A stretch of 51,721 bases of DNA. It comes from Cyanophora paradoxa CCMP329. Taxonomy: Eukaryota; Plantae; Glaucophyta. The stretch lies in the NCBI GenBank assembly GCA_004431415.1, contig QPMI01000336.1, positions 1 through 51,721 on the forward strand, written 5' to 3'. This document shows positions 2,331-49,599 of the stretch, in pieces. Position 1 is the first letter of the stretch. Each line of letters begins with the position of its first letter. The notes below the pieces were generated by a model, which saw only the letters and a program-made list of their open reading frames with translations, was not told where the DNA came from and did not search any database. The position numbers and the translations under genes were made by a program.

Positions 2331-2336
2331 GCGGGT

Positions 2337-13500: not shown

Positions 13501-16500
13501 AGCGCGCCGTTGGCCGCGACCGGCGCAACCTGGTAGACGCTGCCGGGCTCGCCGCTCCTCGGCGAGACGTCGAAGGAGGTCTGGCTGGCCGGGACGGTGC
13601 CGAGGACCTTGCCGTCGCCGATCACCGCGTAGCTTGCGGGGCTGCCCGCGCGAGGGCGGCTCCACGAGAGGCGGCCCGACGAGCCGAAGAGGCCCGGCGA
13701 GGTCGTGAGCTGCAGGTTCGACGGCGCCATGTCCGCGGGGCTCGCGGGGCCCGCGCCGGAGCCGGCCGGGTAGGAGGCCAGCGGCACGCTGTTGCTGGGG
13801 GGCCCCGCGGGGCTGCCCGACGACGAGAGCGGCACCACCGAGAAGTACGAGTTGGCCGCCGCGCTCGGGCTGAGGCCCTTGGGCGCAAACGTAGTGACGC
13901 CCGACGGCGAGGCCTTGACGGTCGCAACCTGGCGGCCGTCCTGCAGGACGCCGAAGCTGCCGCGCGAAATCGCGTCAGCGCCCCGGACCACCGCGAAACG
14001 CGCGCGAATCGCGCGTCCCGCACCTCGCGACGTTGCCCAGGCCGCTCGGCGAGCTCCACGCGAGCAGCGCGCTCGGGCTGGAGCCCGAGCCCGCCGGCGT
14101 CGAGGTCAGCGCGATGCCGGAGCTCGGGTCGCTCGGGAGCGAGGCCGCGAGCGGCGACGAGGCCGGGCCCGCGACGCCGTTGCTGTCGAACGGCACCACC
14201 TGCAGGGTCGAGGCGCCGCCGTTGGTCGGCAGGCCTGAGAGCGGGGCCGAGGTCTGGTTGCCCGCGACCGACGCCACGGGCTTGCCGTCCTGCAGGACAG
14301 TGTACGACGCGGGCGAGCCCGAGGCCGGACGCTTCCACGAGAGGGTGGCGGAGCCGGAGCCGGAACCGCTGCCGGTGAAGCTGCTGAGGGCGAGGCTCGA
14401 CGGGGCGAGCGGGCTGGGGGCGGGGGCGTCCACGCCGGAGCCGGCGATGCCCGCGCCGGGGCTGGATGGACCGGAGGGCACAAAGCTGCCAGAGGAAAGG
14501 CCGGCAGGGGCGGGGGAACGCGAGGTCGCCCGACCGGAGGGGCCGCTGCGCGGACCCGCTGCCGTGGCGTACAGGCCGTCCGAGCCCGACGCTGCGCCGC
14601 CATACCCGGCGCCGCTCAGGGCAGCCGCTCCCACGCCAGCGTACGGGCCCGTCCCGAAGCTGGATCCGGAGCCGCTGCCGACTGGGTTCGATGCCGGGCC
14701 GAGCGCGCCGTTGGCCGCGACCGGCGCAACCTGGTAGACGCTGCCGGGCTCGCCGCTCCTCGGCGAGACGTCGAAGGAGGTCTGGCTGGCCGGGACGGTG
14801 CCGAGGACCTTGCCGTCGCCGATCACCGCGTAGCTTGCGGGCTGCCCGCGCGAGGGCGGCTCCACGAGAGGCGGCCCGACGAGCCGAAGAGGCCCGGCGA
14901 GGTCGTGAGCTGCAGGTTCGACGGCGCCATGTCCGCGGGGCTCGCGGGGCCCGCGCCGGAGCCGGCCGGGTAGGAGGCCAGCGGCACGCTGTTGCTGGGG
15001 GGCCCCGCGGGGCTGCCCGACGACGAGAGCGGCACCACCGAGAAGTACGAGTTGGCCGCCGCGCTCGGGCTGAGGCCCTTGGGCGCAAACGTAGTGACGC
15101 CCGACGGCGAGGCCTTGACGGTCGCAACCTGGCGGCCGTCCTGCAGGACGCCGAAGCTGCCGCGCGAAATCGCGTCAGCGCCCCGGACCACCGCGAAACG
15201 CGCGCGAATCGCACGTCCCGCACCTCGCGACGTTGCCCAGGCCGCTCGGCGAGGTCCACGCGAGCAGCGCGCTCGGGCTGGAGCCCGAGCCCGCCGGCGT
15301 CGAGGTCAGCGCGATGCCGGAGCTCGGGTCGCTCGGGAGCGAGGCCGCGAGCGGCGACGAGACCGGGCCCGCGACGCCGTTGCTGTCGAACGGCACCACC
15401 TGCAGGGTCGAGGCGCCGCCGTTGGTCGGCAGGCCTGAGAGCGGGGCCGAGGTCTGGTTGCCCGCGACCGACGCCACGGGCTTGCCGTCCTGCAGGACAG
15501 TGTACGACGCGGGCGAGCCCGAGGCCGGACGCTTCCACGAAAGGGTGGCGGAGCCGGAGCCGGAGCCGCTGCCGGTGAAGCTGCTGAGGGCGAGGCTCGA
15601 CGGGGCGAGCGGGCTGGGGGCGGGGGCGTCCACGCCGGAGCCGGCGATGCCCGCGCCGGGGCCGGAAGCGGGGCCGTACGGGCCGGCACCAGCGCCAACA
15701 AAGCCAGGCGCGCTAGCGCCGCTGTAGGCGGGCGCAGGGCCCGAGCCGCTGGAGGCGGGGTTCGAGGCCGGGCCGAGCGCGCCGTTGGCCGCGACCGGCG
15801 CAACCTGGTAGACGCTGCCGGGCTCGCCGCTCCTCGGCGAGACGTCGAAGGAGGTCTGGCTGGCCGGGACGGTGCCGAGGACCTTGCCGTCGCCGATCAC
15901 CGCGTAGCTTGCGGGCTGCCCGCGCGAGGGCGGCTCCACGAGAGGCGGCCCGACGAGCCGAAGAGGCCCGGCGAGGTCGTGAGCTGCAGGTTCGACGGCG
16001 CCATGTCCGCGGGGCTCGCGGGGCCCGCGCCGGAGCCGGCCGGGTAGGAGGCCAGCGGCACGCTGTTGCTGGGGGGCCCCGCGGGGCTGCCCGACGACGA
16101 GAGCGGCACCACCGAGAAGTACGAGTTGGCCGCCGCGCTCGGGCTGAGGCCCTTGGGCGCAAACGTAGTGACGCCCGACGGCGAAGCCTTGACGGTCGCA
16201 ACCTGGCGGCCGTCCTGCAGGACGCCGAAGCTGCCGCGCGAAATCGCGTCAGCGCCCCGGACCACCGCGAAACGCGCGCGAATCGCGCGTCCCGCACCTC
16301 GCGACGTTGCCCAGGCCGCTCGGCGAGGTCCACGCGAGCAGCGCGCTCGGGCTGGAGCCCGAGCCCGCCGGCGTCGAGGTCAGCGCGATGCCGGAGCTCG
16401 GGTCGCTCGGGAGCGAGGCCGCGAGCGGCGACGAGGCCGGGCCCGCGACGCCGTTGCTGTCGAACGGCACCACCTGCAGGGTCGAGGCGCCGCCGTTGGT

Positions 16501-19500
16501 CGGCAGGCCTGAGAGCGGGGCCGAGGTCTGGTTGCCCGCGACCGACGCCACGGGCTTGCCGTCCTGCAGGACAGTGTACGACGCGGGCGAGCCCGAGGCC
16601 GGACGCTTCCACGAGAGGGTGGCGGAGCCGGAGCCGGAGCCGCTGCCGGTGAAGCTGCTGAGGGCGAGGCTCGACGGGGCGAGCGGGCTGGGGGCGGGGG
16701 CGTCCACGCCGGAGCCGGCGATGCCCGCGCCGGGGCTGGATGGACCGGAGGGCACAAAGCTGCCAGAGGAAAGGCCGGCAGGGGCGGGGGAAGGCGAGGT
16801 CGCCCGACCGGAGGGGCCGCTGCGCGGACCCGCTGCCGTGGCGTACAGGCCGTCCGAGCCCGACGCTGCGCCGCCATACCCGGCGCCGCTCAGGGCAGCC
16901 GCTCCCACGCCAGCGTACGGGCCCGTCCCGAAGCCGGATCCGGAGCCGCTGCCGACTGGGTTCGATGCCGGGCCGAGCGCGCCGTTGGCCGCGACCGGCG
17001 CAACCTGGTAGACGCTGCCGGGCTCGCCGCTCCTCGGCGAGACGTCGAAGGAGGTCTGGCTGGCCGGGACGGTGCCGAGGACCTTGCCGTCGCCGATCAC
17101 CGCGTAGCTTGCGGGGCTGCCCGCGCGAGGGCGGCTCCACGAGAGGCGGCCCGACGAGCCGAAGAGGCCCGGCGAGGTCGTGAGCTGCAGGTTCGACGGC
17201 GCCATGTCCGCGGGGCTCGCGGGGCCCGCGCCGGAGCCGGCCGGGTAGGAGGCCAGCGGCACGCTGTTGCTGGGGGGCCCGCGGGGCTGCCCGACGACGA
17301 GAGCGGCACCACCGAGAAGTACGAGTTGGCCGCCGCGCTCGGGCTGAGGCCCTTGGGCGCAAACGTAGTGACGCCCGACGGCGAAGCCTTGACGGTCGCA
17401 ACCTGGCGGCCGTCCTGCAGGACGCCGAAGCTGCCGCGCGAAATCGCGTCAGCGCCCCGGACCACCGCGAAACGCGCGCGAATCGCGCGTCCCGCACCTC
17501 GCGACGTTGCCCAGGCCGCTCGGCGAGGTCCACGCGAGCAGCGCGCTCGGGCTGGAGCCCGAGCCCGCCGGCGTCGAGGTCAGCGCGATGCCGGAGCTCG
17601 GGTCGCTCGGGAGCGAGGCCGCGAGCGGCGACGAGGCCGGGCCCGCGACGCCGTTGCTGTCGAACGGCACCACCTGCAGGGTCGAGGCGCCGCCGTTGGT
17701 CGGCAGGCCTGAGAGCGGGGCCGAGGTCTGGTTGCCCGCGACCGACGCCACGGGCTTGCCGTCCTGCAGGACAGTGTACGACGCGGGCGAGCCCGAGGCC
17801 GGACGCTTCCACGAGAGGGTGGCGGAGCCGGAGCCGGAGCCGCTGCCGGTGAAGCTGCTGAGAGCGAGGCTCGACGGGGCGAGCGGGCTGGGGGCGGGGG
17901 CGTCCACGCCGGAGCCGGCGATGCCTGCGCCGGGGCCGGAAGCGGGGCCGTACGGGCCGGCACCAGCGCCAACAAAGCCAGGCGCGCTAGCGCCGCTGTA
18001 GGCGGGCGCAGGGCCCGAGCTGCTGGAGGCGGGGTTCGATGCCGGGCCGAGCGCGCCGTTGGCCGCGACCGGCGCAACCTGGTAGACGCTGCCGGGCTCG
18101 CCGCTCCTCGGCGAGACGTCGAAGGAGGTCTGGCTGGCCGGGACGGTGCCGAGGACCTTGCCGTCGCCGATCACCGCGTAGCTTGCGGGGCTGCCCGCGC
18201 GAGGGCGGCTCCACGAGAGGCGGCCCGACGAGCCGAAGAAGCCCGGCGAGGTCGTGAGCTGCAGGTTCGACGGCGCCATGTCCGCGGGGCTCGCGGGGCC
18301 CGCGCCGGAGCCGGCCGGGTAGGAGGCCAGCGGCACGCTGTTGCTGGGGGGCCCCGCGGGGCTGCCCGACGACGAGAGCGGCACCACCGAGAAGTACGAG
18401 TTGGCCGCCGCGCTCGGGCTGAGGCCCTTGGGCGCAAACGTAGTGACGCCGACGGCGAGGCCTTGACGGTCGCAACCTGGCGGCCGTCCTGCAGGACGCC
18501 GAAGCTGCCGCGCGAAATCGCGTCAGCGCCCCGGGCCACCGCGAAACGCGCGCGAATCGCGCGTCCCGCACCTCGCGACGTTGCCCAGGCCGCTCGGCGA
18601 GGTCCACGAGAGCAGCGCGCTCGGGCTGGAGCCCGAGCCCGCCGGCGTCGAGGTCAGCGCGATGCCGGAGCTCGGGTCGCTCGGGAGCGAGGCCGCGAGC
18701 GGCGACGAGGCCGGGCCCGCGACGCCGTTGCTGTCGAACGGCACCACCTGCAGGGTCGAGGCGCCGCCGTTGGTCGGCAGGCCTGAGAGCGGGGCCGAGG
18801 TCTGGTTGCCCGCGACCGACGCCACGGGCTTGCCGTCCTGCAGGACAGTGTACGACGCGGGCGAGCCCGAGGCCGGACGCTTCCACGAGAGGGTGGCGGA
18901 GCCGGAGCCGGAGCCGCTGCCGGTGAAGCTGCTGAGAGCGAGGCTCGACGGGGCGAGCGGGCTGGGGGCGGGGGCGTCCACGCCGGAGCCGGCGATGCCT
19001 GCGCCGGGGCCGGAAGCGGGGCCGTACGGGCCGGCACCAGCGCCAACAAAGCCAGGCGCGCTAGCGCCGCTGTAGGCGGGCGCAGGGCCCGAGCTGCTGG
19101 AGGCGGGGTTCGATGCCGGGCCGAGCGCGCCGTTGGCCGCGACCGGCGCAACCTGGTAGACGCTGCCGGGCTCGCCGCTCCTCGGCGAGACGTCGAAGGA
19201 GGTCTGGCTGGCCGGGACGGTGCCGAGGACCTTGCCGTCGCCGATCACCGCGTAGCTTGCGGGGCTGCCCGCGCGAGGGCGGCTCCACGAGAGGCGGCCC
19301 GACGAGCCGAAGAAGCCCGGCGAGGTCGTGAGCTGCAGGTTCGACGGCGCCATGTCCGCGGGGCTCGCGGGGCCCGCGCCGGAGCCGGCCGGGTAGGAGG
19401 CCAGCGGCACGCTGTTGCTGGGGGGCCCCGCGGGGCTGCCCGACGACGAGAGCGGCACCACCGAGAAGTACGAGTTGGCCGCCGCGCTCGGGCTGAGGCC

Positions 19501-22500
19501 CTTGGGCGCAAACGTAGTGACGCCCGACGGCGAGGCCTTGACGGTCGCAACCTGGCGGCCGTCCTGCAGGACGCCGAAGCTGCCGCGCGAAATCGCGTCA
19601 GCGCCCCGGGCCACCGCGAAACGCGCGCGAATCGCGCGTCCCGCACCTCGCGACGTTGCCCAGGCCGCTCGGCGAGGTCCACGAGAGCAGCGCGCTCGGG
19701 CTGGAGCCCGAGCCCGCCGGCGTCGAGGTCAGCGCGATGCCGGAGCTCGGGTCGCTCGGGAGCGAGGCCGCGAGCGGCGACGAGACCGGGCCCGCGACGC
19801 CGTTGCTGTCGAACGGCACCACCTGCAGGGTCGAGGCGCCGCCGTTGGTCGGCAGGCCTGAGAGCGGGGCCGAGGTCTGGTTGCCCGCGACCGACGCCAC
19901 GGGCTTGCCGTCCTGGAGGACAGTGTACGACGCAGGCGAGCCCGAGGCCGGACGCTTCCACGAGAGGGTGGCGGAGCCGGAGCCGGAGCCGCTGCCGGTG
20001 AAGCTGCTGAGGGCGAGGCTCGACGGGGCGAGCGGGCTGGGGGCGGGGGCGTCCACGCCGGAGCCGGCGATGCCTGCGCCGGGGCCGGAAGCGGGGCCGT
20101 ACGGGCCGGCACCAGCGCCAACAAAGCCAGGCGCGCTAGCGCCGCTGTAGGCGGGCGCAGGGCCCGAGCTGCTGGAGGCGGGGTTCGATGCCGGGCCGAG
20201 CGCGCCGTTGGCCGCGACCGGCGCAACCTGGTAGACGCTGCCGGGCTCGCCGCTCCTCGGCGAGACGTCGAAGGAGGTCTGGCTGGCCGGGACGGTGCCG
20301 AGGACCTTGCCGTCGCCGATCACCGCGTAGCTTGCGGGGCTGCCCGCGCGAGGGCGGCTCCACGAGAGGCGGCCCGACGAGCCGAAGAGGCCCGGCGAGG
20401 TCGTGAGCTGCAGGTTCGACGGCGCCATGTCCGCGGGGCTCGCGGGGCCCGCGCCGGAGCCGGCCGGGTAGGAGGCCAGCGGCACGCTGTTGCTGGGGGG
20501 CCCCGCGGGGCTGCCCGACGACGAGAGCGGCACCACCGAGAAGTACGAGTTGGCCGCCGCGCTCGGGCTGAGGCCCTTGGGCGCAAACGTAGTGACGCCC
20601 GACGGCGAGGCCTTGACGGTCGCAACCTGGCGGCCGTCCTGCAGGACGCCGAAGCTGCCGCGCGAAATCGCGTCAGCGCCCCGGGCCACCGCGAAACGCG
20701 CGCGAATCGCGCGTCCCGCACCTCGCGACGTTGCCCAGGCCGCTCGGCGAGGTCCACGCGAGCAGCGCGCTCGGGCTGGAGCCCGAGCCCGCCGGCGTCG
20801 AGGTCAGCGCGATGCCGGAGCTCGGGTCGCTCGGGAGCGAGGCCGCGAGCGGCGACGAGACCGGGCCCGCGACGCCGTTGCTGTCGAACGGCACCACCTG
20901 CAGGGTCGAGGCGCCGCCGTTGGTCGGCAGGCCTGAGAGCGGGGCCGAGGTCTGGTTGCCCGCGACCGACGCCACGGGCTTGCCGTCCTGCAGGACAGTG
21001 TACGACGCAGGCGAGCCCGAGGCCGGACGCTTCCACGAGAGGGTGGCGGAGCCGGAGCCGGAGCCGCTGCCGGTGAAGCTGCTGAGGGCGAGGCTCGACG
21101 GGGCGAGCGGGCTGGGGGCGGGGGCGTCCACGCCGGAGCCGGCGATGCCCGCGCCGGGGCCGGAAGAGAGAGCGTACGGAGAAGTTGAATCGAACGGCGC
21201 GCCGTTGCCGGCGCCACTGTAAGGGCCAGGTGCCGGGCCTGCACTTGATACAGGACGGGTGGCAGGGCCGACGTTTCCGTAGCGATCGAGAGGCGCAACC
21301 TGGTAGACGCTGCCGGGCTCGCCGCTCCTCGGCGAGACGTCGAAGGAGGTCTGGCTGGCCGGGACGGTGCCGAGGACCTTGCCGTCGCCGATCACCGCGT
21401 AGCTTGCGGGGCTGCCCGCGCGAGGGCGGCTCCACGAGAGGCGGCCCGACGAGCCGAAGAGGCCCGGCGAGGTCGTGAGCTGCAGGTTCGACGGCGCCAT
21501 GTCCGCGGGGCTCGCGGGGCCCGCGCCGGAGCCGGCCGGGTAGGAGGTTAGGGGCACGCTGTTGCTAGACTGCCCAATGGGTACGCCGTTGGGGTTTAGA
21601 GCCACGATCGAGAAAAGAGATGCAGAGTGCGCGGCCGAGCTCGAGGGCAGGACGCCCTGGTTGAGGAGCCCGTTGACGCCGGACGGGGAGGGCTCTACAG
21701 AGGCCACCTTCACGCCATCCTTTAGGACAGCAAAGCTGCACGAAGAGGAACAATTGTAAATTAAAGGTGTATATATTCCCGGAGTCGACATCAGCGCATA
21801 TCGCGCACCTCGCGAGGTCGCCCGAGGTCGACGGAGTCGTCCACGACAAGATCGCACTGCGGCTCGCGATCGTCTCGGGGCCGGAAACAGTCGATGTCAA
21901 GACCATGCCTGTTCTCGGGTCGCTGGGAAGCGTGGCAGAAAGCGGAGCGGAGGCAGGCCCGACGACGCCGTTGCTGTCGAACGGGACCACCTGCAGGGAC
22001 GTTGCGCCACCAGAGTTCGGCAGGGCAGAGACCGGCAGCGACGTCTGATTTCCTGGAACGCTGGCGATGGGGAAGCCGCCCTTGAAAATGGTGTAGCTTG
22101 CGGGAACACCGACGTCTGGGTGGCTCCACGAGAGTGTGGCCGATCCGGGGCCGCTGCCGTTGAAACTGCTGAGGGCGAGATTGGAAGGAGCGAGGGGGTG
22201 GGGAGCCTGGGCTCTAATTCCAGAGCCGGCAATGCCCGCGCCGGGCGACAGCGGAGTGGCCGAGCTCGAGGCGCCGGACGGGTCGCTGCCGCTGACAACA
22301 GGTTGCGACGCTGGCCCAGAAGAGCCAAAGCGGTCGATGGGAAGAACCTGGTAGACGCTGCCGGGCTTGGGAGAGACCTCGTACGCCGTCTGGTTGGCGG
22401 GGACGGTGCCAACGACCCTCCCGTTCTCCGTCACGGCGTAGCTGGCAGGGTAGCCAGCTGCTGGCGGGTTCCACGAGAGGCGGCCCGACGAGCTGAAGAG

Positions 22501-25500
22501 GCCCGGCGAGCTCGTGAGCTGCACGCCGCTGGGCATCATGGCCGTCTGCGGCGCCGTGCCGGCGCCTGAGCTGAGAGGGTACGAGAGCAGGGGCACAGTG
22601 CCGCTGGCCGAGCCTATGATGTCGCCAGCAGGTGAAATTGGCGCGACGGTGAAGAGCGGCTCGCGATCGACGCTGGTGCCACTCGGCAGATTCTTGACGA
22701 TGAACGAGTTGATGCCGGAGGGAGACGGCTTGACGGTGCCGATCTGACGTCCGTCCTGCATAACGGCGTATCTGCAGAAAGAAGAAGCGTCAGACTGCGG
22801 TTCCAGAAATTGCTCTCCCTAGAAACTTCAGCAATCGCTCACCCTGGAGGGCCGCCTGCGCCGCTTCGGAGGTCTCCAGCAGGCGTGGTCCACGAGAGGA
22901 GCGCGCTCGGGTTGCTCGCGTTGCCGGTGGGCGTTGAGGTGAGGGCGATGCCAGTCGTGGGGTCGCGGGGAAGCGTTGCGGCCAGCGGCGATGAAGATGG
23001 GCCCGCATAGCCCTTCTCGTCGAAAGGAACGACCTGAAGCGTCGACGGGCTGCCATCGGTCGGCAAGTCGGAGACCTGAATCGAGTTTTGGCTGCCAGGC
23101 ACGAATCCGATGGGGCTCCCATTCTTGAGAACGGTATAGCTGCTCGGAGTGCCATTCTGAGGCGGGCGCCACGAAAGGATGGCGGAGCCGGAGCCGCTGC
23201 CGTTGAAGCTGCTGAGGGCGAGGCTCGACGGGGCGAGCGGGCTGGGGGCGGGGGCGTCCACGCCGGAGCCTGCAATGCCCGCGCCGGGGCCGGTGGCGGG
23301 GTGGTACGGGCCAGGAGCGCCCATCCCGGGATCATTCGACACGGGCAGCGACGGAGGGCCGACGTTGCCGAAGCGGTCGATGGGCAGGACCTGATAGACT
23401 CTGCCGCCACGCGGCGCATCGGCCGATGTTGCACTGCCAGAAACTGTACCGGAAATCTCCCCGTCGCTGACGATTGCGTACTTGGCCGGGTTCCCGCTGG
23501 AGGGAGGGTTCCACGAGAGCTTGCCGGGCGAGCCGAAGATGCTCATACCGGCGGCTCCGGTGAGCTGCAGGCCAGTTGGAGCCATCGATGGCTGGCTGGC
23601 GTTCGGGCCGGCGCCGGAGCCTACAGGGTACGCCGACAGAGGCGCCTTGTTGCTAATGGCGCCAATGACCTCGCCGCTGGGCGAGATGGGCGCCACCGAG
23701 AACAGGGTCTCCTCGCCAGGGACGAGCCCAGGGTTCCGAACGACGAAGGAATTCACAGCACCCCGTGTCGAGATCGGACTCGGGGGCTTGACCGTGCCAA
23801 TTTGCTGTCCATCCCTGAAAATTGCGTAGCCGCCAATACCAGCGCCGCCGGCTGCGCCAGTGGAGGGCGTTCTCCAGGCGAGATGGCCGCTCGAGCTCGG
23901 CCCGGGGCCCATCGGCTGGGATGTTAGTGCAATACCGTTGCTGGGATCGCTGGGAAGAGCCGCTGCAAGCGTGTGCGAAGGGGGGCCGGACACGCCATTG
24001 CCATCAAAAGGAACGAGCTGCAGCTTGGTGTACTCGCCGTTGGTGGGCAACCCAGACAGGGGGTACTCCGTGCGGTCGCCAGGGACGGTCCCGATGGGCT
24101 CTCCATCCTTGAAGATGGTGTAGCCCGCGGGCTGCCCTGCCAGTGGCGGCGTCCACGAAAGCATGCCGGAGCCAGAGCTCGAGCCCCTCCCGCCGTCGCT
24201 TGTCAGGCCGACGTTGGACAGGGCGAGGTTAGACGGGGCGAGCGGGCTCGGGGCGGGGGCATCCAGCCCCGAGCCCGGGAAGCCCGCGCCCGGTCCGGTC
24301 GGGCTGTACGGTGTCTTCCACAGGCCGCCGAGGTCCCGCGAGCCAGCTGCAACGCCCGTGGCCTCGGCGTTTCCGGCACCGGTGGCAGCGCCGGTGCCCG
24401 TGCGTGTGTACCAGTCGTACGGGGCGGTCTTCTTGTCACTTGGGGAAATGAAGGGCACGCGCAAGGTGCCCTTGACGATTGCAGCGGTGATGCCGACGAC
24501 GAGAAGGCCGGCGGCACCGATGCCAAACGCGAGCGGTAGAATGTGCGACATCTGCACCGGCATTTCTTTCTAAGATTTATTTGCAGCAGAGATGTGCGTG
24601 TGGATACCTGGTTGCTGTTGCCCTGGCCCGCCTCGCCGTCTTGTGGCGGAAGCCCGCCGGAGCTCGGAGCGAACGCAGGCTGGTTCGGCGTGAAGAAGTT
24701 CGGGATGATTTGGCCGAGGGTGAACTGCGCAAAATTGAGCATATTAAAAGAGAACTCAAGCGGTAGCTGGCGCTTCAAACTTGCCGTGGTCTGCGCGAAG
24801 GCAAAACGTTAACCGTCACATGCATCGATGTAAGCAAAAATGCACTTGAAAACTTCTCGCACCAGATGCGTGCAGAATCCACGAGCGTACCAAATTTGCT
24901 GTCCCTGCGCACGAATTTCGCTTTCTAGATCTGCACCTAGAGAAGTGCAAGAGAAGTGCATAATCTATTAATCTATTACGCACATTAATCTCGAGCTGGA
25001 AAAGATCTCCGGCGTTGGTCGCGGTGGGATCGGGATTCTTTGCATCGCCAAGCTGGAGATGGATATCGGTTCAGCAACAGCACGCATTGAATTTTGACCC
25101 TCTCACGTGTAAACCCCGCGCACCCACATGTTGATCTTCGGCTTCAGCTTCGTCTGACATGGCATCCAGCTATTCAAGGTCTCGTCCCAGTAAATGAGAT
25201 ACTGCTGCTCCGTGGGCATGGACACTTGCGTCACGGGATACGGGATCTCGATGATGATCGGCGTCGAGTCCGGGAGGCCCGAGATGCGGGAACCGAGCAC
25301 CTGAGCGAAGGGCATCAGTAGGCTGGCTGGATGTTTAATTCCTACTTGCATTGTGTTGGTGTCTACGTTATAGCCTACATATATGCTTTAAGAGTAAGCA
25401 CAGGGCACCGAAATGTCGACGAAGCCACCCGTGATCTTGACATCGCCCTTGACCGCTCCGCCTTCGGGCCCCCTCCACACGGCCGGCCACGGGGACCTCT

Positions 25501-28500
25501 CCATGTTCAGAACGGACACACCAAACCTGCCGCGGATTTGGCAACATGTCCGCTTCGATGCGGGCTCGGACGAACCCGTCCTGGGTTCCGTTATTAGGCA
25601 CGAAGTCACGGACTGCAAACGGGAGCTTGACGAGCGCAGGGTTTACGCCGAATCCGCCTGAGACGGTCGGAAAGTCGTAATAGCGCCTGTGTTCACGATC
25701 GGATCAAATTGCTAGACGACCGCGGCCGCGTACGGTGCATTTTGAATGAGAAGACTCAGCTATACATGCGCACCTTATGTCTGTGAAACAAACTGCACGT
25801 ATGCGAGGGAGCGTTCAATGTTAGCATCTACGGCTGCAGTGCAACGGCGCTAGCGGGATTCACAGCATACGCACTCTTCCCAGCAGTCTGTTGTTTCGGA
25901 CGTAGGATAACCAGGTCGTCAGCCGAGTGCACGTGTTTCAGGTTAATGATGAAGCACATATGCATGTTCATGGCTAATTCCCAGAAAATATCATTTCCGA
26001 TCATAAATATTTAGGCGGACATTATTAAGATTATTCCAGTGATAAGGCGTTATAACCGCAGAGAAACAAATGCATCAAGCACCACAGCGGCGGCTTCGGC
26101 GGATGTGTTTCTGATTCCGTCTTCGCACTTTCGGCAGCTGCGAAAATGAAAAGCGATTGAGTTTAGCGGCTGATCATGGATTCCAACTCTCGACGTGAAA
26201 CGTTTGACAGGATGAAAGCGCACTTGGCAAAGCGGCCTTGGGGCGCCTTGATCAGAGTGTTGAGCAGGTTTGCAAGCGGGCTGGCCGACGCCTCGGTTTG
26301 CCCGGTGAGGCCCGTGCCGGCGGTGCTGACCCAGTCCGGACTCGAGATGGCGGCGGACATCGCCACGAGGGCCTGCGTATTTGCACGTTGTTGGAGTGAG
26401 GCTGGGTAATAGATTGCTCCGAAGTAAAATGAGGTTTCATAACGAAATCGTACCTCTTTCAGATACACGCTGAGATCGAGGTTCACGAAATCGCAGGGGT
26501 CGAGTTGCGGCTTGCAGCTCGACAGTTGTATCATCATCGTCGAATTTAGGTACCTGGCTTCACAATCACATGCGACAAAATTAAAGGACACACATAAGGG
26601 TAAAGGTTCACTCGGAAGAGGAATCTGCTAAATTGTTGATGGCAGTAATGACGCCCTGGAGCTCCGGGTACGAGGCCACAATGTCTCCAGAGGCTTTGGC
26701 ACGGTTCCGGGAGCGATCTGCGGCAGTTGCAGCCGAGCACACATCGTTGATCAACGTTGCCAAGCACGGAGGCCGCCCTGCGCACCCGAAACTGAATATT
26801 AATCGAAATTCTGAGACTGTCACTGCATGCGCACGAACGGCCAAAACTAGTAATTATAATGCACCTTCGCCCTTAAAGTTCTTGCTCAGGGCGCTGATTG
26901 CATCGCTCTCCAAAATTGTCTTCTGCTGCTCGACAATGGCGCCCGAGTCGAACTGCTCCTTTATCCAAACCATGCGAATTTCGTAGGTCGAGCAGGCATC
27001 CGGCGGCTGGACGACCGTGATACTCAGCGGAACATCTGCTCGAAGTCGTGGATCAATTATATTATTAGCAATGCAAAAACGAGACTGTTATAAAAAAGTA
27101 CCCGAGCAGATACAGCCGTTGCTCGAGCAGATGGTCGCTGTAAGCGCATGCGTGCCGACGGGGAACAGATAGGAGGGAATCATGACGTTGCTCTCTTGGG
27201 GCTTGACCAGAACCTCAGACGTCTTGTCCAGCTAATTATATAAAAACTGAACATTAGAAAGATCCATACCACACAATTTTAATTATACGTGTGCTCACCT
27301 TGAGGGAATAGTTGAGTGGAAGCGCCCCGGAAGGCGGCTTCCAGTCGGAGCACGTGACTGTGAAGCGCGTCTCGAGGAATGTACCCTCCGTAGGCGACAC
27401 CGTGCACGTTCCGGGATCAACCAACGCCGACCGTCCGACAAGGCGTATGGTAGCCTGATCGGAGACCGCGGGAGGGGATGCGCCCGGACTGCCAGGATCG
27501 GGCGCCGTCGCAGAGCATCGCTGCACAGCACGGCCGCGACCGCGGGCGAGAGATCAATAGAGGTGAGAAAGACTCGCGACGAAAACCACGCACGATGACG
27601 TATTCTCTGTCTGCAAAAGATAGAAAGCGATCACGTGTTAAAGTTAGAGAGAGATCAGGCACGTCGTAAAGTCTCTTGAAGCAATGAAAATGTACAATTG
27701 CAATCATTAAGACTCACTGTACTCAAAGGCCGGGCGGGAGTCTGGAGTGAAGAACAGGGAGTCTTCGACTCTTGAAACTTGCCTGTAGTACCTGTATATA
27801 CGTGTCCGATCGCGAATGCGAGCCGTATGCACGCGTACGCATGAGCTTCCAAATCCAAACACACAAAATCAACACCGCACAGAAATGCGCACGGGGACCT
27901 GTCAAGATCCGCCAGGATGGACTCGCCGTTTGGCGCGGACCAGGTATGGACGGCGACTGTGGGGAATGCGTCATAGTTGAGAGCCGAAGAGGTGCAGCGA
28001 ATGACGATCTTTTGATTGATGCAGACGCTGTCGGCGGCCCCTGGAGGCGGCGAGACCTCCACCTTCGAAGTGTTTTATAATTAGTATTCAACCGATCGCG
28101 AACACGCGTACAATTGCTTTATTATAACCAGCTACACAGCTCGAGCTCCGCGTGAGCACCTGGACCTTGACCTGCAAGGCAGGGGTGGGATTTGTGGGAT
28201 TTGTGGGGCCTGTGGGATTTGTGGGATTTGTGGTATTTGTGGTGTTTGTGGTGTTTGTTGTGTTTGTTGTGTTTGTTGTGTTCGTTGTGTTCGTTGTGTT
28301 TGTTGTGTTTGTTGTGTTTGTGGGGTGTGTGGGGGGTGTGGTGGGTTTCGGGAGAACTTGCAAAGGGCAGTCTGTCACAAGGAAGTCCCTGCTGCTCTCG
28401 CGATAACCGCCTGAATTCGAAGTGGCAATTGTGAGAGACTAGTTCAACCAGTCGATCTTTATCTCACCAAAGCGGTTGAGTGCACGGAGGAGAACGCGGT

Positions 28501-31500
28501 GCACGCGATTCGGGATGCAGAGGAAATCTCTCCCGCCGAACGGCTCCTCGAGGGTTTTGATGTCGAAACTCGTTGCGTCGCGAGGGATTTTTCTGATCGT
28601 ATTCACTACGTTCTCGTGATCTACGGCTGCGTCAAGATCCTTGTATTCGGGTTTCAGCGGATCCGCCGTGGTCGCTAGGGGCTGCTGGCCCAAGTCTTGA
28701 AGCTGAGCGATGGCCCCCGCGACCGTCATGATAAGGGATTTTCCATTTTCCATTTAACGATAGTAGCAATCGTAAGCTCGAAACCGCACCCGAACGATAA
28801 GCATGTCATAGCCATACGGCGTGTGGTGGCCGTCGGTCGGATTCTCCCACTCGACAATGTAGTCGCTTCCGATGGGCTTCGGTTTCGGAGCTGCAGCACG
28901 AGTGCGCTTCACAATCATGCAAATGCCTGTATGTATTTGAGCCGTGGAGGGACAAACCTGTCCAGGCTTGGAAGTCCGTCCACTTTGTTGCGTTGTCTTT
29001 GGAGAAGACGTAGGCGAATTGCGCGCTAAGGCCGTCTCTGGAGATGATTTTCGCCGCGTGACGGTTTTTCCAGTCAAACCACAGCTCAATCATGCTGATG
29101 TCGTCGGCCTTGTCGCCCACAGCCTGCTTCGGCGGCTGATTGGGGGCAGTGATTGGATCCGCCATGACGTTCTTCCCAGGAACGCCACCAACAGGCCGAG
29201 GAGTACGACCTGTCCCCGCCCTCGCCAGTCCAAGGCTGTGCTCCTCACCCACAAGCCTGCGCAATGGCAATGAAGTAAGGGACAGAATTGTTCGGGCTAT
29301 CGCGACCCAAGCATTTATATATACATATACGCACGCAATGTAGCAACGATCTGCAAGACGCGACGAGATTAGGAGCCGTACGCGTTATCATGATATATAT
29401 ATATATAACATGACCCCACCGAGAATGAATCCGCCTGCACCGACGGCCGCGACGGTGTCTTTTGCAGTGGAGACGCTGGGATGCGGCGCCCCAGGTTGCC
29501 TCAAAATTTCATTTTTGGTTGCTGCGTGTTATCGTCCATATCGATCGAATCACAGGGTGAATTCAAATCAAGCTCACGTACCAAAGTATTCTGTGTCCGG
29601 GAAGTACCCGTTTAGTGTGCATCAGTTAAGCGTGCTATATCTAGATAGTAAGAGGGACATAAATCACACCTCCGTAGGTCGTGTTGCCATATCCAACATA
29701 ACCAGACGCATCCTCCATCCAGTTGCTCGCATCCCACCGCTGCCTGCGCAGAGGTGTCATGTGCATGCTAAGGCTTGCAATGGAGCAATGAAATCGAACA
29801 TGCCTTGAAGGGCCCCAGTGGATGTAATTCTTGCTGAGACGATCGATCCCTGCCGTGTCTAAAGTGGTGACATCCGCTGTGTCGAGCCCGGCAAGGGTTC
29901 CTGCACGGATCAAATGATAGTCGGCAGCTGCGACCGCGGGGCTCACGATCGAAGAATATTAACTACTGCCATACCGAGCTGCTGATCGTTGTCCGGATCT
30001 AGTCCTCGCAAATAATACTTAATTTGCTTCACTCCGTAGGTGAAGCCGGCCGAACGTCCCGGATTATTGAAACTGCAAACCACAGTACGTTCGGCAGCAA
30101 GCACAGATTGAATCGCGAGCCACGCGCAAACACGCACAGCAGAGTGACATCGACGTAGATCTGGAAGTACTCATTGGTCTCGTGGAAAAAGTAACTGTGA
30201 AATGCGTAAGGCGCAGACATTGGTAGTTGCAAGCTGCTTGTAAACCGCTCACGTTGTGGTGATGTTCAATTGACTTTGCTGTGCTTGGTGCACAATCGTG
30301 ATGCCGTCGGGCTCCGTGATGTTCTTTATTATTTTCCCCTTGAATGGTTCCACGAAGCCCAAGTCTTCCTGCAGGCGCCGACCATATGTGGGCAGTCATG
30401 ACTATACAATCGCGCTCGGAATTCCAAGCGCACCAATACTGTGCCATATCCGATGTTCTTGTACTGTTTTGCCCCAGCTCCGGTGTCAACTCCGATGCCC
30501 CAGCCTTCGACCTGAAAAACGATTAGGTAATTATATGTATAGAATTTAAACCCGCGAGACGAATTCTTATGTGGATGCATATATACGCACAGGCAAACCG
30601 GGAGTCTGAATTCGAAGGCAGGGAACGAAATGAACGTTAGAGAGAGCCGCTGGAATGATCATCGAAAACATAGTTCGAGACGTCGACACGTGCATGTACG
30701 CACCACATAGTCCTGATCATAACAAAACAAAATGAACGAACAGTGTCAGCACGCTGCAGAATAAAGGCTAGAGAAACAAACAGCAGAGAAAAATATAGCG
30801 CACTCCGCAGTACGGCATTTGCCTGAAAGAGTGCGCAAGCAATGGGTGAGAATAAAGCAGATTGCTTTCGGAGCGACATAGATTGCGAATATCGATCTAG
30901 GATAACGACAAGAATCTGCTTAGAATCTAAAGCGGTGTACCCTGCAGCTATTCAAAAAAAGTGGTCTAGATCTCACCGGCCGGTCTTGCATCCAGTTCCT
31001 TTCGTGCAATCGGCTTCAGCCGCGACGTAGTCATCGAATTCTGATCGGTACCGAGAATAAACAGAAGCTAGAATGAGTCCTCACAAACGAGAATAAAGCT
31101 AAAACCGCTTACGAGGCCACGTGTTCCACTGTTATAGAGAGATCGAGTCGGGAACGTAAACCGGGACCATCGTTATGGTCAGATCTAGAAGTCTTTCGAT
31201 TCGGCATGTGCGACAGACTGAGAGCTCACCCCGTCACGATCCGCGTCGACGAACAAGCCGAAGCCCTGGCGACGGTTCTGCGAGTACCCGATTGGGAGAT
31301 ACGGGCTGACGTATGGCGAGTACTGCGCGCTTCCGAACGAAGCCTCGGCTCCTTGGATCGCGACCATGATAGACTTGCCGAAGACGAAATAGTCGTATTG
31401 ATCATCCAGTTTCGTGTCCGTCCTGAAAGGAATGCTCGGATAGGTAGTGCGAATGACGGTACCGGCTTCTGAAGGCTTAATCGCTGCACAAGAGCATCAA

Positions 31501-34345
31501 CCAACGGAGAATTTCAGAGGTTGTACCGCACACATACCGAGATGTCCACGGATCTATTAATATACGAATTTGCATGGATTTGTGTGAAGAAAAAATAGCA
31601 AGGGGGAGAATCACGCATTACCTCGAATAGAGGCATGAACTGCTGGCGTTGATGCTCTGTGCAGTACCACCTGCATCGGGGCTGGCGATCGTACTGTGCT
31701 GGCAAAAGCTGGAATACTGCGCATGGAGCACGGACATGGGCGAAATCCAAGTCGTTGTTTTGGAGTTGTAGTCTTCCCAAAGGCCGAAGCGCGTGTTGGG
31801 TTCTTCGGCCTTAAATAAGCCAGCAGTCGCTTGGGTAGACGATACGTCCTGATCCGCGCGACGATTGTATTCGAGTTGCCTGCACATGCATGTCATGCAT
31901 ATGGCGGCCGAATCAAGAAAGGAAATGTTCCAATGACAACAATAATCACCCCATGATATGTCCAAGCCACCTTGATGGGGGAACAAGTCAGTGCGCATAA
32001 ATACTTATTTGCAAGCTAAAGCATCGAAGAAACAGCAGTTTAGGCCGAACCTTGGAAAAGAGTGGCCTCCCGCCTTGGGGTCGGGGAAAACGACGTTGGG
32101 GGCTTCGTTCGGATTCGGCGGATTCCAAGATTTTGTAGCGGTCGCGTAGATTTTCAGGTTGGCGGCGGATGGGTGGCGCTCGCTGCGCAATATTCAATCA
32201 ATTGCATTTCCGCCCCCGAAACACTTCGTATTTTGTCGACGAACGGACCCGAACCACTTGCTGACGGCATAGTCGTACTCTGCGATACAAATCAGGATAC
32301 GAAGCGTGCAGAGAACTTCGAAGCAGAACGCACCCTCCTGGCCAGGCGCAGGGACTTTGTTCCATTTGGGATCATAATATGTCGCAAGCTGCACATGAAA
32401 GCTCGTTAAGTACTAGCACAGTGTTTGATGCCGTAGGTTTTTCATGTCACCGAATCAAGAAACCCAACGCGCGTACCGAGAACAGCCCTATAAATATCCT
32501 CAATGGAAATCGTTCAGAAGAAACGCGTCAAGAAAAGCAGGTGAGCATGAGCGATCGAGAAAAAGCAAGAAGCAAATCATGATCACCGTCCGCGACATCT
32601 GTGCGCCGGATGCTGCCGGATCACGAATCAACGCCGGGCATGTACAATGCACAGGAAACAATATGCAATGTCTCACCGGAGGCAGTACTGAAGTCCGGAG
32701 GCATGGAGTCGGCGTGAGTGAAGCGTGCTCGTGATCATGATGTACATGGAAAGCGCGCACGGCATCATATATAGTAATCGGCTCGCTGCACTGAACATAA
32801 ACGTCAAGCGTTTTGGTTGTGGAATCTGTTCGAATTCGGCTTCGTGAGGATTCGAAAAAAAAAGTATATGTAGGAGTAGAACTCGTTGACCGCGAGTGGT
32901 GGCATCTACGGTCACAGACCCGCAGACACCAAAGAGTGGGAAATCTTTCGGCCGTTTCTGGAGGAGACGCCAGCATCCAATTCACGCATGCCACTTGAAA
33001 CGAACAAGCAAAACACCTGATATGCGCTGTTGACGTAGGTCGGGACTCTGTAAGCCGCTTCCAATTTCTCCGCGCTCTGGCAAGCGCCATCGGTAGCGCA
33101 AGGCCATCCATGTCCGCTCCGACCGCGATTCGATTTAACGACAGAGACCTGCAGAACGCGATTAGAAAAAGGTACTGAACGCGACAGCAGGATCCGAATA
33201 TCGATGATGCAAATTAAATGGCGGCATTGCAACGTCGGACCTCGAAAACCCAGTTTTTAGGGAGGGTGGTCGAGAATCCGTTAGCTGGGTCATATATCGT
33301 CGACGTGTCCGGGAAATAGAGTCTTCGGGAGCCGGAAGTTAAAAACGAACTCATGAACGCATTCGAAACCTTGAAGTACTTGAGGATCGCACGTAAAATA
33401 GGCGCTCGTCATGTTGTAGGGCGCGTTCGTGTACCGCATGCTGCACCGCGGAATTACAAGAGCCCGATGCTAAACCCCAGACGCTTTGAACTCACCAGTG
33501 GAAAAAGTCAGCTGTGGGGCGAATGCGAGCGTTGGGTTATCAGGATTCGTGTTGTTGGTCGCAGAGAGAATAAACATTATGATTAACTCACACGTCGGTC
33601 CGCGGGCCTCGACGATTTGAATATTAACGCCAGTTGTGCCGTCAATTCGATATGTCGAAGGAACTTCCGCTGTAATCCCGTCTTTGAAGCAATAGGTGTT
33701 GTAGCGATATTGGCCATCGATCTCCCAGTAATTGCCGATGCGACCTTGGTCTGCGACATATATGTGTCACTTGAGCACTTGGTCTCCATGCTCACACGGA
33801 CGATCGATATCATTGATCTTGGAAAAAGACGACGTACGCATGTAGAAAGAGCTTTCTTGCGGGCTTTTTGCTGCACTGGCGGGCTCGCCGCCATCGCTCG
33901 TGCCGTTGCCCTTGAAGTAGGTCGATACGATTGGCTGCATCCGTTGTCGTTGGTCGCGATCGCATCGATATCGCTGTCAGGTGGCAATATTAATAGAGCT
34001 CGAGATTACCTTGTCTCCTGGTAGCCCGTCCGAGAACCGAATGCCAGGGCGACCCTGGACACCACTGCGAGGCGGCGATGCGCCCCCCAATACACGAGTC
34101 AGTCTGAGTTAGCTAAACAGCGATCTCACCATCGACAACGCTAACGCGCGTGCGCATTGAGCGCATTAAAACACGCACACGGGGCCCATGTCTCCGCACT
34201 GCTTCGGGGTTGTACACGCCGCCGCCGAAACCGAGGCGACAACGAACGCTGACAGAACAAGTACCAGTGTCGCTAGAACGAACGAGGCCGCACTGCTTTG
34301 CTGGCCTGTGGTGGCGCGCCGGCCGAAGCCGCGCGCCGTCGCCAT
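4591..34345 (-). CDS. Giant multi-exon single-pass receptor: REJ + GAIN/GPS (polycystin-1/adhesion-receptor-like ectodomain), 1 TM, cytoplasmic array of ~53 FN3-like domains; 3' end uncertain
   Basis: Many junctions join in frame by manual GT/GC-AG splicing. Landmarks: ATG 34345 with a signal peptide; REJ motif DPGTCTVSPTEGTFLETRFTVTCSDWKPPSGALPLNY (~27300-27420); GPS motif YLIYWDETLNSWMPC...GFCTHL|TT|FTLG (25205-24715); TM 24542-24474; then FN3-like repeats. Introns checked for frame: 24791-24862, 24725-24784, 24552-24607, 22772-22842, 21736-21808 and the 67-nt repeat intron. Not every junction in 25600-34180 was resolved. Confidence 0.75.
4606..4658. repeat. 20-bp tandem repeat (ttttcccctcgaaaaccact), ~2.6 copies
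   Basis: Read directly from the sequence. It lies next to an imperfect direct duplication at 4425-4482 and 4521-4572. Confidence 0.9.
5430..21570 (-). repeat. Near-identical coding tandem array: 13 full units (short 1075 bp = 1008 exon + 67 intron; long 1201 bp) plus flanking partial units, each encoding 3 FN3-like domains
   Basis: 14 copies of the intron GTGCGGGACG...CTGAC...GGCAG, with low coordinates 20655, 19580, 18505, 17431, 16231, 15157, 13957, 12884, 11686, 10485, 9411, 8211, 7137 and 6066. The domains follow the pattern APSxL...LSW..P....Y.V..DG..V..V....TS.....L......QV.P....G..GP.S. Confidence 0.95.
24474..24542 (-). other. Single transmembrane helix
   Basis: ILPLAFGIGAAGLLVVGITAAIV (23 uncharged residues) followed by K, R and KK, so the positive-inside rule favours a cytoplasmic C-terminus. 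Confidence 0.8.
24715..25330 (-). other. GAIN/GPS autoproteolysis motif region
   Basis: ISGLPDSTPIIIEIP...YLIYWDETLNSWMPC...LFQLEIN|GQQIWYARGFCTHL|TT|FTLG gives the H-L-T-x-F consensus just before the TM helix. Confidence 0.8.
26860..28090 (-). other. REJ (receptor for egg jelly / polycystin-1) module
   Basis: GTCTVSPTEGTFLETRFTVTCSDW..S.ALPLNYSL matches the REJ hallmark G-x-C-x-V-x-P-x2-G-x3-T-x-F-x3-C-x2-W-x-D/P...PLxY. It is followed by YLFPVG..ALTATICSSNG and then a helical region, as in REJ-GAIN proteins. Boundaries are approximate. Confidence 0.8.
28186..28350 (-). repeat. Coding 9-bp microsatellite: (NTT)x~10 plus NPT repeats, mucin-like stalk rich in N-glycosylation sequons
   Basis: Plus-strand gttgtgttt/gtggtgttt repeats at 28230-28319. 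The minus frame reads PKPTTPPTHPT(NTT)n NPTNPTGPTNPTNPTP and is in frame with the preceding exon (RFG|GYRESSRDFLVTDCPLQ). Confidence 0.85.
28960..31475 (-). other. Ectodomain module resembling bacterial surface/adhesin proteins, split over many micro-exons
   Basis: Spliced translation: FVFGKSIMVAIQGAEASFG...LPIGYSQ...GFGLFVDADRDG|WNTWP...DYV|TPGLP|VEGWGIG...YYLRGLDPDNDQ...YFATKNEILRQPG...DDISMIELWFDW...SAQFAYVF. The family resemblance is from recall, not from a search. Confidence 0.5.
34181..34345 (-). CDS. First coding exon of the giant receptor, with signal peptide
   Basis: MATARGFGRRATTGQQSSAASFVLATLVLVLSAFVVASVSA|AACTTPKQCGDMGP: basic N-region, hydrophobic core, small-residue cleavage site (VSA), followed by a GT donor. 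Confidence 0.75.
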
Positions 34346-49383: not shown

Positions 49384-49599
49384 ACGGGTCTCGAAGTCCA
49401 ACGGTTGCTTAGCGGGCCCCGTCCGCACCCCCACCCCCGTCCCCCCTCCCTCACCGGCCTTCCCGTACCCCGCATTCGAACATCGCCCCTTGCCGTCCCC
49501 CCCACACGAGCTGCCATGGGGTTCGGGCCGCGGCGTGCACGAGCTCGCGTTTATTGGGGAGGGCGGAGGGGCGCGGGGGGCCGGAAGGGCTCAGCCGCC

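Follow-up and report, generated by a model that had tools for sequence, protein, structure and literature searches.

A probable 6-nt exon supplying the predicted nucleophile of a GPS-like site in a REJ/FN3 gene of Cyanophora paradoxa

We analyzed a GPS-like motif in a 51,721-nt stretch of the Cyanophora paradoxa genome (source contig tig00001406; the whole stretch is hereafter the window) and conclude, with a probability of roughly 0.7, that the hexamer ACCACG at positions 24790-24785 of the minus strand is a real exon of 6 nt, most likely a constitutive one, in a gene of the REJ / GAIN-GPS-like / FN3 type. The splice sites flanking it are, as we infer, put to use and are probably paired across each intron, because the introns here are short (56-108 nt). 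A 72-nt GT-AG intron upstream and a 60-nt GC-AG intron downstream would be removed independently, leaving Thr-Thr between ...CTHL and FTLGQ... and so restoring the family's conserved CTHL/TTFT site (slashes mark the scissile bond or an exon border). That an exon junction coincides with the predicted scissile bond most plausibly reflects an inherited peculiarity of gene structure in this family and not a regulatory device. The micro-exon is thus a well-supported curiosity of gene structure and not evidence for a new regulatory mechanism.

The gene lies on the minus strand and comprises a REJ domain, a GAIN/GPS-like region, a single transmembrane (TM) helix and then a long FN3 array. Its product is most likely a giant polycystin-like, single-pass protein of the REJ / GAIN-GPS-like / FN3 type, encoded by an intron-dense gene. 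The public annotation of this gene is fragmented, with models at the locus that end short of the micro-exon and none that covers its site. In the direction of transcription, the features are as follows.

27302 to 27421, minus strand: core of the REJ match, inside an exon ending at 27299 (donor GTGAGC at 27298)
25409 to 25504, minus strand: GAIN-B-like exon, at least this part, MERSPWPAVWRGPEGG...FVDIS; first exon of public model P0002 (donor GTGCCC at 25408)
25124 to 25300, minus strand: GAIN-B-like exon of 59 aa, VLGSRISG...YLIYWDETLNSWMPCQTKLKPKINMW, followed by donor GTGCGC at 25123
24984 to 25052, minus strand: loop exon of 23 aa, read by hand, LGDAKNPDPTATNAGDLFQLEIN (acceptor CTCCAG, donor GTGCGT)
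24863 to 24904, minus strand: exon of 14 aa, GQQIWYARGFCTHL, ending on the His-Leu of the GPS-like triad (acceptor GTGCGCAG at 24905)
24791 to 24862, minus strand: 72-nt GT-AG intron (donor GTGCGA, acceptor TTCGCGCAG, ...CGCGCAG) with one in-frame stop
24785 to 24790, minus strand: candidate 6-nt micro-exon ACCACG, Thr-Thr, the predicted nucleophile P1′ plus P2′
24725 to 24784, minus strand: 60-nt GC-AG intron, in frame and stop-free (donor ACG/GCAAGT, acceptor TTTTGCGCAG, ...TGCGCAG)
24608 to 24724, minus strand: exon of 39 aa, FTLGQIIPNFFTPNQ...GNSNQ, predicted last beta-strand and stalk (donor GTATCC at 24607)
24552 to 24607, minus strand: 56-nt GT-AG intron between stalk exon and TM exon, read by hand, phase 0 on both sides
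24470 to 24551, minus strand: start of the TM exon, MSHILPLAFGIGAAGLLVVGITAAIVK, with one predicted TM helix
5027 to 24300, minus strand: FN3 array, in DNA of 72-76% GC with long near-identical repeats

The REJ domain is assigned by Pfam profile PF02010, which matches residues 45-84 of the minus-strand translation of 27257-27553 with 38.7 bits against a curated cut-off of 25 (E 6.4e-10); the paralog P0004 gives a REJ match of 78.2 bits (E 6.5e-22). Model P0002 (eukprot tig00001406_g8591.t1) matches the window at 100% identity, and at the 59-aa exon the public model runs past the donor at 25123 into a stop codon. That exon aligns with residues 32-78 of the paralog P0003 and residues 845-894 of P0004, and the loop exon aligns weakly with P0004 residues 902-916 (LGDPDDP..GDIFQ). 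The TM exon is supported by the paralog model P0001 and aligns with the membrane helix in both P0003 and P0004; its open reading frame extends to 22842, into FN3 domains (fn3 E 2.5e-11). The whole array probably belongs to the same gene, as P0003 and P0004 each join GPS, TM and FN3 parts in one predicted protein.

Every splice letter and coordinate that the first-pass annotation had read between 24874 and 24724 was confirmed on the minus strand. The upstream exon ends in TGC ACG CAT CTG (CTHL; 24874-24863), and TTC ACC CTC starts at 24724, where the downstream exon reads FTLGQ.... Twelve introns of this neighborhood, read by hand, measure 56-108 nt, with GCGCAG ends in 4 of the 12, and the mean intron in the C. 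paradoxa genome is 86 bp (PMC6704402). Both the 72-nt and the 60-nt intron fall within this local size range and acceptor style, while an undivided intron of 138 nt (24862-24725) would exceed all the other introns read in this region. The hexamer itself is flanked as a conserved coding micro-exon should be, by AG upstream and GC downstream with acceptors of the GCGCAG type; the GCAAGT donor at 24784 is preceded by CG and is the sole GC donor among the 12 introns. When we enumerated all internal exons of the form AG/exon/GY within the 138-nt gap, ACCACG alone yielded HL-[S/T]-x-F, and the remaining in-frame options (FE, FEAP or FEAPAT) lay behind a poor acceptor; inclusion of the 6-nt exon is indeed, as had been proposed, the only splicing that gives H-L/T-x-F. 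With both introns required to be at least 40 nt, a splice-flanked hexamer coding exactly for TT arose in 0.07% of sequences shuffled by mononucleotide; with dinucleotide shuffling the figure was 0.10%. An [S/T]-x hexamer arose in 4-5% of shuffles and any stop-free hexamer in 24-35%.

The same two residues recur in the paralog models. P0003 and P0006 (both on tig00021532) and P0004 (tig00000131) read RGRCTHLTTFT[V/T]G, with TM helix and FN3 array following as they do here, and CTHLTTFT does not vary among paralogs whose surrounding sequence is just 46-53% identical. The paralog loci are g22184 and g22185 on tig00021532, g7474 on tig00000131 and g18345 on tig00021108. Exon 24904-24863 covers P0003 residues 96-105 (..CTHL) and P0004 residues 921-930, and exon 24724-24608 covers P0003 residues 108-148, beginning at F108; an exon-by-exon placement of the window on P0003 thus has a sole gap at residues 106-107, TT, exactly the product of the hexamer. 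TT stands at the same position in P0003, P0004 and P0006, all of which read CTHL-TT-FT, and FT follows it directly, without an extra 20 aa. As the first-pass annotation had noted, one exon border would lie precisely at the predicted site of cleavage. The models are BRAKER1/AUGUSTUS predictions and not mRNAs, so that the paralog TT is known from predicted proteins alone; the genome's authors state that C. paradoxa gene models need curation (PMC6704402). Relatives of the protein were found in Cyanophora only: an exhaustive phmmer search with P0002 had no hits other than P0003, P0004 and a repeat protein (P0005) that is unrelated, a word search using the GAIN region of P0004 returned nothing beyond P0004 and P0003, and a metagenome scan for further relatives came back blank. 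One further member of P0003's cluster, P0007, was rejected as a paralog: it is an unrelated 36-aa fragment, and its contig (L001), with thyroglobulin-, spondin- and TIL-type genes, is an animal-like metagenome contig unrelated to the alga.

The public RNA runs searched gave no support for the exon. The only sequencing runs containing the stretch were four DNA-type runs from 2012, and 17 putative RNA runs held a fraction of just 0.00-0.02 of its words. Contigs from four putative RNA runs (X12, X5, X8 and X11), which can show presence and not absence, included no spliced contig and no splice joint at the micro-exon, and no read or cDNA in these runs linked the hexamer to both of its neighbors. 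A single piece was recovered, from X12.

24679 to 24845, strand unassigned: 167-nt contig of putative RNA run X12, colinear with the genome

It runs through the micro-exon and the whole 60-nt intron and extends 55 nt into the 72-nt intron; because it also enters the latter, it is simply unspliced pre-mRNA or DNA. The gene seems unexpressed in the RNA runs searched. We also considered the contig as a small structured or otherwise known RNA and rejected this, as Rfam returned only a miRNA row elsewhere (E 0.58) and the fold had a z of 0.35; the RNA across the site shows no significant structure.

These data bear on how the 138 nt between the two flanking exons are spliced. Were the hexamer unused and the gap a single intron, the protein would read CTHL-FTLG without a nucleophile, as in a non-cleavable or degenerating paralog. 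In favor of this reading, the gap begins with GT and ends with AG, and its outer donor, GTGCGA, is strong, while the inner donor is of the GC type, unique among the local introns, and preceded by CG; the locus also appears silent, and the public annotation has no model here. Yet a hexamer coding exactly for TT, flanked by AG and GC and placed behind an acceptor of the GCGCAG type, would have to be there by chance (about 0.1%), together with the longest intron of this gene part, while the paralog models retain TT, and we regard it as unlikely. Removal of only the 72-nt intron, with the 60 nt coding, would give HL/TTASLKRQLPLEFSFNMLNFAQFTLG (+20 aa). The segment keeps the frame, contains no stop and is spanned without a break by the lone X12 contig, but that contig also enters the 72-nt intron by 55 nt and hence is not this isoform; the paralogs lack a 20-aa insert, which would moreover swap the hydrophobic T-x-F strand for a charged segment. 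Among the readings considered, this is the one to which we give least credence.

The first-pass annotation had gone further, proposing a possible switch that would, depending on conditions, include, skip or retain the micro-exon region and so yield receptors that can or cannot be cleaved. Its need for a micro-exon to complete a GPS-type site is supported; the switch is not. All three forms are in frame, and skipping would lose the Thr nucleophile; in animal adhesion GPCRs, low-abundance alternative splicing of the GPS-coding part occurs and can matter functionally (PMC6667449). However, frame-keeping on skipping is automatic for any 6-nt exon, and short introns that are in frame and stop-free, like the 60-nt one, are common by chance (about 1 in 8 at this length by our estimate), a second such intron, of 81 nt (26453-26373), being present in the same gene. 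Retention, moreover, offers no clean off state: the isoform keeps its Thr nucleophile (HL/TTASLK...). No inclusion, skipping or retention isoform appeared in the RNA runs searched, let alone two or more in condition-dependent ratios, no form but the TT one occurs in the paralog models, and no significant RNA structure covers the site. We therefore consider regulated splicing here quite improbable. Its family-wide extension, in which a whole family of giant REJ/GPS/FN3 proteins of one glaucophyte would keep the nucleophile on a regulated 6-nt exon and splicing decides self-cleavage, is if anything harder to credit; if true, such an exon would represent an ancient, non-animal, splice-level control of GAIN autoproteolysis.

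A separate question is whether the domain is a GAIN/GPS at all, or whether CTHL/TTF is a chance look-alike, in which case the micro-exon, even if real, would be unrelated to autoproteolysis. Neither Pfam GPS (PF01825) nor GAIN (PF16489) scored above cut-off on single exons, on P0004:1-1000 or on P0003:1-260; the exons of the window were searched singly, with the public paralog models standing in for the spliced protein. On P0004:880-945 the GPS profile gave a sub-threshold 12.7 bits against a cut-off of 22.5 (E 0.19), an alignment restricted to the core RCTHLTTFT (positions 35-43 of the 45 in the profile), so that the cleavage core falls exactly on the motif. The H-x-[S/T] triad and the hydrophobic T-x-F strand are present in the paralog models (CTHLTTFT) ahead of a TM helix that lies 17-65 residues further on, and about 45 residues downstream at this locus; in the window, the triad exists only with the 6-nt exon spliced in. 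The cysteines depart from the usual pattern (C..W..GC ... C-x-C-x-HL): there is one Cys pair position (SWMPC ... FCTHL here, SWEPC or SWETC ... RCTHL in the paralogs), with Gly in place of the first Cys of C-x-C, and Pro-Cys or Thr-Cys in place of Gly-Cys. Two disulfides and a Gly-Cys backbone contact to the His contribute to cleavage competence, and the H-x-S/T triad by itself is not sufficient for cleavage (PMC13062082). A GAIN fold consists of a helical subdomain A and a beta sandwich B of 13 strands, in which the strand after the cleavage site is buried. Structure models, built from only four sequences, were poor: AF2 returned helices followed by strands for the paralog region (pLDDT 34), and a model of the beta half alone (pLDDT 53, pTM 0.50) failed to place the TTFT segment. 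With these poor-confidence models, Foldseek found no match at E≤0.001 and VIA-align gave a generic sandwich as its best hit (Z 5.4), with the GAIN structures 6v55, 8vy2 and 8ikj at Z 3.0-3.3; a PDB sequence search found no match. Against a look-alike stand the invariance of the motif in the diverged paralogs and the order REJ, helical region, beta region with W..W..C upstream of the site, C-x-H-L-T-x-F and TM within about 45 residues, which is that of polycystin-1 and suREJ; Atlas feature matches to GPS/GAIN clusters at 0.76-0.85 are a lead only. On this evidence we judge a look-alike improbable, although GAIN membership would follow from context, and self-cleavage between Leu and Thr is predicted from the motif.

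Among the closest known parallels is the polycystin-1/sea-urchin REJ family, which likewise has REJ (PF02010) upstream of C-x-H-L/T-x-F next to the first TM helix and shares the one conserved Cys pair position (W..PC ... FCTHL). Unlike those proteins, the Cyanophora protein has 1 TM helix and not 11, carries no PLAT and no channel part, bears a huge FN3 array after the helix, and has a domain that falls below the Pfam GPS/GAIN cut-off and lacks both the first C-x-C cysteine and the glycine of Gly-Cys. As in the animal adhesion GPCRs, GPS and membrane part lie on separate exons. Splicing in those receptors is documented to give variants with a changed or missing GPS (for example of GPR114/ADGRG5 and Gpr126; Knierim et al. 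2019, PMC6667449), so the idea of a switch has precedent there. These animal variants were seen in RNA, whereas the Cyanophora micro-exon is known from genome sequence alone. A GPR114 paper (PMC10622838) is silent on the splice variant, and in none of the adhesion GPCR literature that we examined does the nucleophile stand by itself on a 6-nt exon that borders exactly on the scissile bond.

Correct annotation of this gene family depends on the micro-exon if that exon is real, and GPS-type sites with a conserved HL/T triad would reach a glaucophyte. It would also amount to a natural experiment, as proteins with and without the two residues differ exactly by the predicted nucleophile. Exons of 6 nt are often missed by gene predictors and RNA aligners. 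Conserved coding micro-exons are found in intron-rich eukaryotic genes, where they are very short, a multiple of 3 in length, flanked by short introns and code for conserved residues. The present candidate differs from those in its glaucophyte host, its predicted catalytic residue and its GC-AG downstream intron. This 60-nt intron sits in an unusually AT-rich part of the gene (about 45-57% GC).

The hexamer ACCACG, which lies on the minus strand between an exon ending in CTHL and one beginning with FTLGQ, is best read as a real and constitutive micro-exon encoding Thr-Thr, a reading to which we assign a probability of about two-thirds (0.68). That the hexamer is a coding exon is slightly more probable still, because its fit to a Thr-Thr in a paralog, its rarity in shuffled sequence, and the sizes and acceptors of its two introns support it jointly. 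The letters and coordinates reported for this site in the first-pass annotation match the minus strand exactly:

Letters read at the micro-exon and its flanks
to 24863, minus strand: exon end ...GGA TTC TGC ACG CAT CTG (G F C T H L)
24862-24791, minus strand: 72-nt intron GTGCGA...TTCGCGCAG
24790-24785, minus strand: hexamer ACCACG (Thr-Thr)
24784-24725, minus strand: 60-nt intron GCAAGT...TTTTGCGCAG
from 24724, minus strand: exon start TTC ACC CTC GGC CAA... (F T L G Q)

The same annotation held that only this splicing yields H-L|T-x-F, and the hexamer is indeed unique in giving HL-[S/T]-x-F among all AG|exon|GY internal exons of the 138-nt gap (24862-24725); the other in-frame options encode FE, FEAP, and FEAPAT and have a poor acceptor. 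When the gap was shuffled with its outer splice sites kept, and with AG before the hexamer, GT or GC after it, and at least 40 nt in both subintrons, a TT-encoding hexamer arose by chance at a frequency of 0.07% with mononucleotide shuffling and 0.10% with dinucleotide shuffling. The 12 introns that we read by hand in this neighborhood span 56 to 108 nt (median, ∼71), the genome-wide mean being 86 bp (PMC6704402), and GCGCAG, the 3′ end of 4 of the 12, also closes both candidate introns.

An exhaustive phmmer search of 1.84 billion representatives returned only two true relatives of P0002, the public model for this locus, both of them public C. paradoxa models (EP00741_Cyanophora_paradoxa): P0003 (tig00021532_g22184.t1; 53% identity), which has a tandem twin, P0006, and P0004 (tig00000131_g7474.t1; 46% identity). 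The predicted cleavage-site region is unbroken in all three paralog models, reading ...YYARGRCTHLTTFTVGEI... in P0003 and P0006 and ...WYLRGRCTHLTTFTTGTLI... in P0004, and is followed by a transmembrane (TM) helix, AFILP[L/I]AFGIGGVALLL, and then by FN3 domains. Aligned singly to P0003, exon 24904-24863 covers residues 96 to 105 and ends in CTHL, exon 24724-24608 covers residues 108 to 148 and begins with FT, and the TM exon covers residues 172 to 198. Throughout, the window exons served as separate queries, and the public paralog models stood in for the joined spliced product. Residues 106 and 107, left uncovered by the window exons, are Thr-Thr, identical to the translation of ACCACG, the paralog residues being known from predicted protein models rather than cDNAs. 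Exactly at the position of the window's 56-nt intron, P0003 carries a 23-residue insert (residues 149 to 171; VRVRRRPPLSDAPVFEPGPGAAQ) that, judged from its protein letters, looks like a GT...CAG intron retained in frame by the gene predictor, since its first residue is V (GTN) and its last is Q (CAG); there are thus signs that P0003 is in part an ab initio prediction. Two further candidates were rejected: P0007, a 36-amino-acid member of the 90% cluster of P0003, is an unrelated, misclustered fragment, and the 190-kb contig carrying it (ENA ERZ21742408 ctg5755l), tried as a source of paralog DNA, is animal-like given its thyroglobulin-, spondin-, TIL-, and PAE-type genes and is unrelated to the Cyanophora gene.

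At the locus itself, P0002 (EukProt tig00001406_g8591.t1; 97 amino acids) is 100% identical to two window exons by word search, which, together with the accessions of the paralogs, identifies the window as contig tig00001406 of the Cyanophora paradoxa v2 assembly. P0002 is a fragment (25106-25504) that passes over a strong donor, GTGCGC at 25123, and runs on to a stop, so that no public model crosses the GPS region here. The public annotation was produced by BRAKER1/AUGUSTUS with RNA-seq guidance and, according to its authors, needs manual curation (PMC6704402). It splits the gene family into pieces, P0002 being a two-exon fragment and the paralog model P0001 (tig00021108_g18345.t1) beginning at the TM helix (compare window 24551 downward). 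We read a model by hand from the REJ domain downward:

Pfam domains and hand-read gene model, in order
27302-27421, minus strand: REJ domain (Pfam, E 6.4e-10)
within long ORF 24569-22842, minus strand: fn3 (Pfam)
1, minus strand: REJ exons and helix-rich region
2, minus strand: exons MERSPW...FVDIS and VLGSRISG...YLIYWDETLNSWMPCQTKLKPKINMW
3, minus strand: loop exon, 23 amino acids
4, minus strand: GQQIWYARGFCTHL, then [TT], then FTLGQIIPNFFTPNQ...GNSNQ
5, minus strand: 56-nt intron
6, minus strand: MSHILPLAFGIGAAGLLVVGITAAIVK, one TM helix
7, minus strand: FN3 repeats, ∼19 kb, 72 to 76% GC

The stretch was found only in four 2012 runs, which are DNA, because it is present there with its introns, whereas 17 putative RNA runs contain 0.00 to 0.02 of its words. 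The junction reads proposed as a check yielded no joint for inclusion, skipping, or retention in four of the putative RNA runs. In X12, a run taken as RNA by guess, a single 167-nt contig (24679-24845; depth, 4.9) lies over the micro-exon region, with zero cover in the other 5 kb mapped. The contig is colinear with the genome, taking in the hexamer, the whole 60-nt intron, and 55 nt of the 72-nt one. It stems from RNA that was not spliced or from carried-over DNA and is evidence for none of the three isoforms. Neither a known RNA family at this contig or site nor significant RNA structure across the site (z 0.35) was found.

Four rival readings, some of which could hold together, share the remaining probability. 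Were the gap a single 138-nt intron, it would exceed every local intron. This reading, in which the hexamer goes unused, is favored by the inner donor, ACG|GCAAGT, whose GC follows CG and which is the sole GC donor among the 12 local introns. In its intronic part, GCAAGT is the classical strong form of a GC donor. Retention of the 60-nt intron would keep the frame with zero stops (the 72-nt intron has one in-frame stop), but the three paralog models read through the site unbroken. A regulated switch between cleavable and noncleavable receptor isoforms, as the first-pass annotation envisaged, found nothing in its support: skipping and retention do both keep the frame, as stated there, but there is no sign of a switch, and a 6-nt skip is in frame by arithmetic. 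The retention product would moreover keep the nucleophile, because it still reads HL|TT.... By our own estimate, an in-frame, stop-free 60-nt intron has a chance of ∼1 in 8 (one-third for length times ∼0.38 for 20 codons without a stop), and an 81-nt intron of the same gene (26453-26373) is likewise in frame and stop-free. The concept has an animal precedent (PMC6667449), and a switch here, if true, would add another case without establishing a new principle.

A last rival, that the motif is not a true GPS, draws on the Pfam GPS score (12.7 bits; E 0.19), by which GPS is not formally reached, on the lack of any PDB sequence match, and on unspecific fold searches (best Z 5.4 for a generic sandwich; Gpr126, CELSR1, and CD97 entries at Z 3.0 to 3.3). 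Against it stand the REJ-to-TM context and the C-x-H-L-T-x-F motif, invariant in paralogs about half identical around it. From this context, the site is probably a GPS in a GAIN domain: REJ lies upstream (78 bits in P0004), followed by a helical region, a beta-rich region with W..W..C, the motif, and the TM helix. The cleavage core of the Pfam GPS profile (positions 35 to 43 of 45) aligned to RCTHLTTFT; an Atlas feature search placed GPS/GAIN clusters at 0.76 to 0.85, under the level that counts, and AF2, with four sequences only, gave a pLDDT of 34 over the full region and of 53 when the beta half was modeled alone, the post-HL strand being unplaced. Where adhesion GPCRs have Gly-Cys, the Cyanophora family has Pro-Cys or Thr-Cys, and it lacks the first Cys of C-x-C. 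The H-x-S/T triad is by itself insufficient for cleavage, and neighboring contacts matter (Pohl et al., PMC13062082), so self-cleavage of the Cyanophora protein at CTHL|TT is a prediction from sequence.

Window 5027-34000 (minus strand) is apparently one gene of two compositions: the REJ/GAIN part with its introns has 49 to 57% GC (∼24000-34000), and the FN3 array after the TM helix has 72 to 76% (∼6000-22000), close to the genome-wide average of 67.6% or higher (PMC6704402). Within 6000-20800 (minus strand), the array consists of long near-identical repeats in which an ORF ends every ∼1,075 nt with identical peptide ends (e.g., ...SALLAWTSPSGLG), each unit having ∼71-nt introns (AG|GTGCGG...GCGGCAG); the array may have been amplified recently, or its copies may have been collapsed or expanded in the assembly. 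Seventeen tandem copies of a 9-nt unit, TTTGTGGTG, lie upstream of the REJ exons (28191-28343), and the three minus-strand frames of this repeat (TNTTNT..., HKHNKH..., and QTQQTQ...) are all stop-free. The outer regions, 1573-3236 and 38000-51700, have 78 to 83% GC and numerous short tandem repeats, and a 140/425-nt repeat at 2321-3236 has 91% matches.
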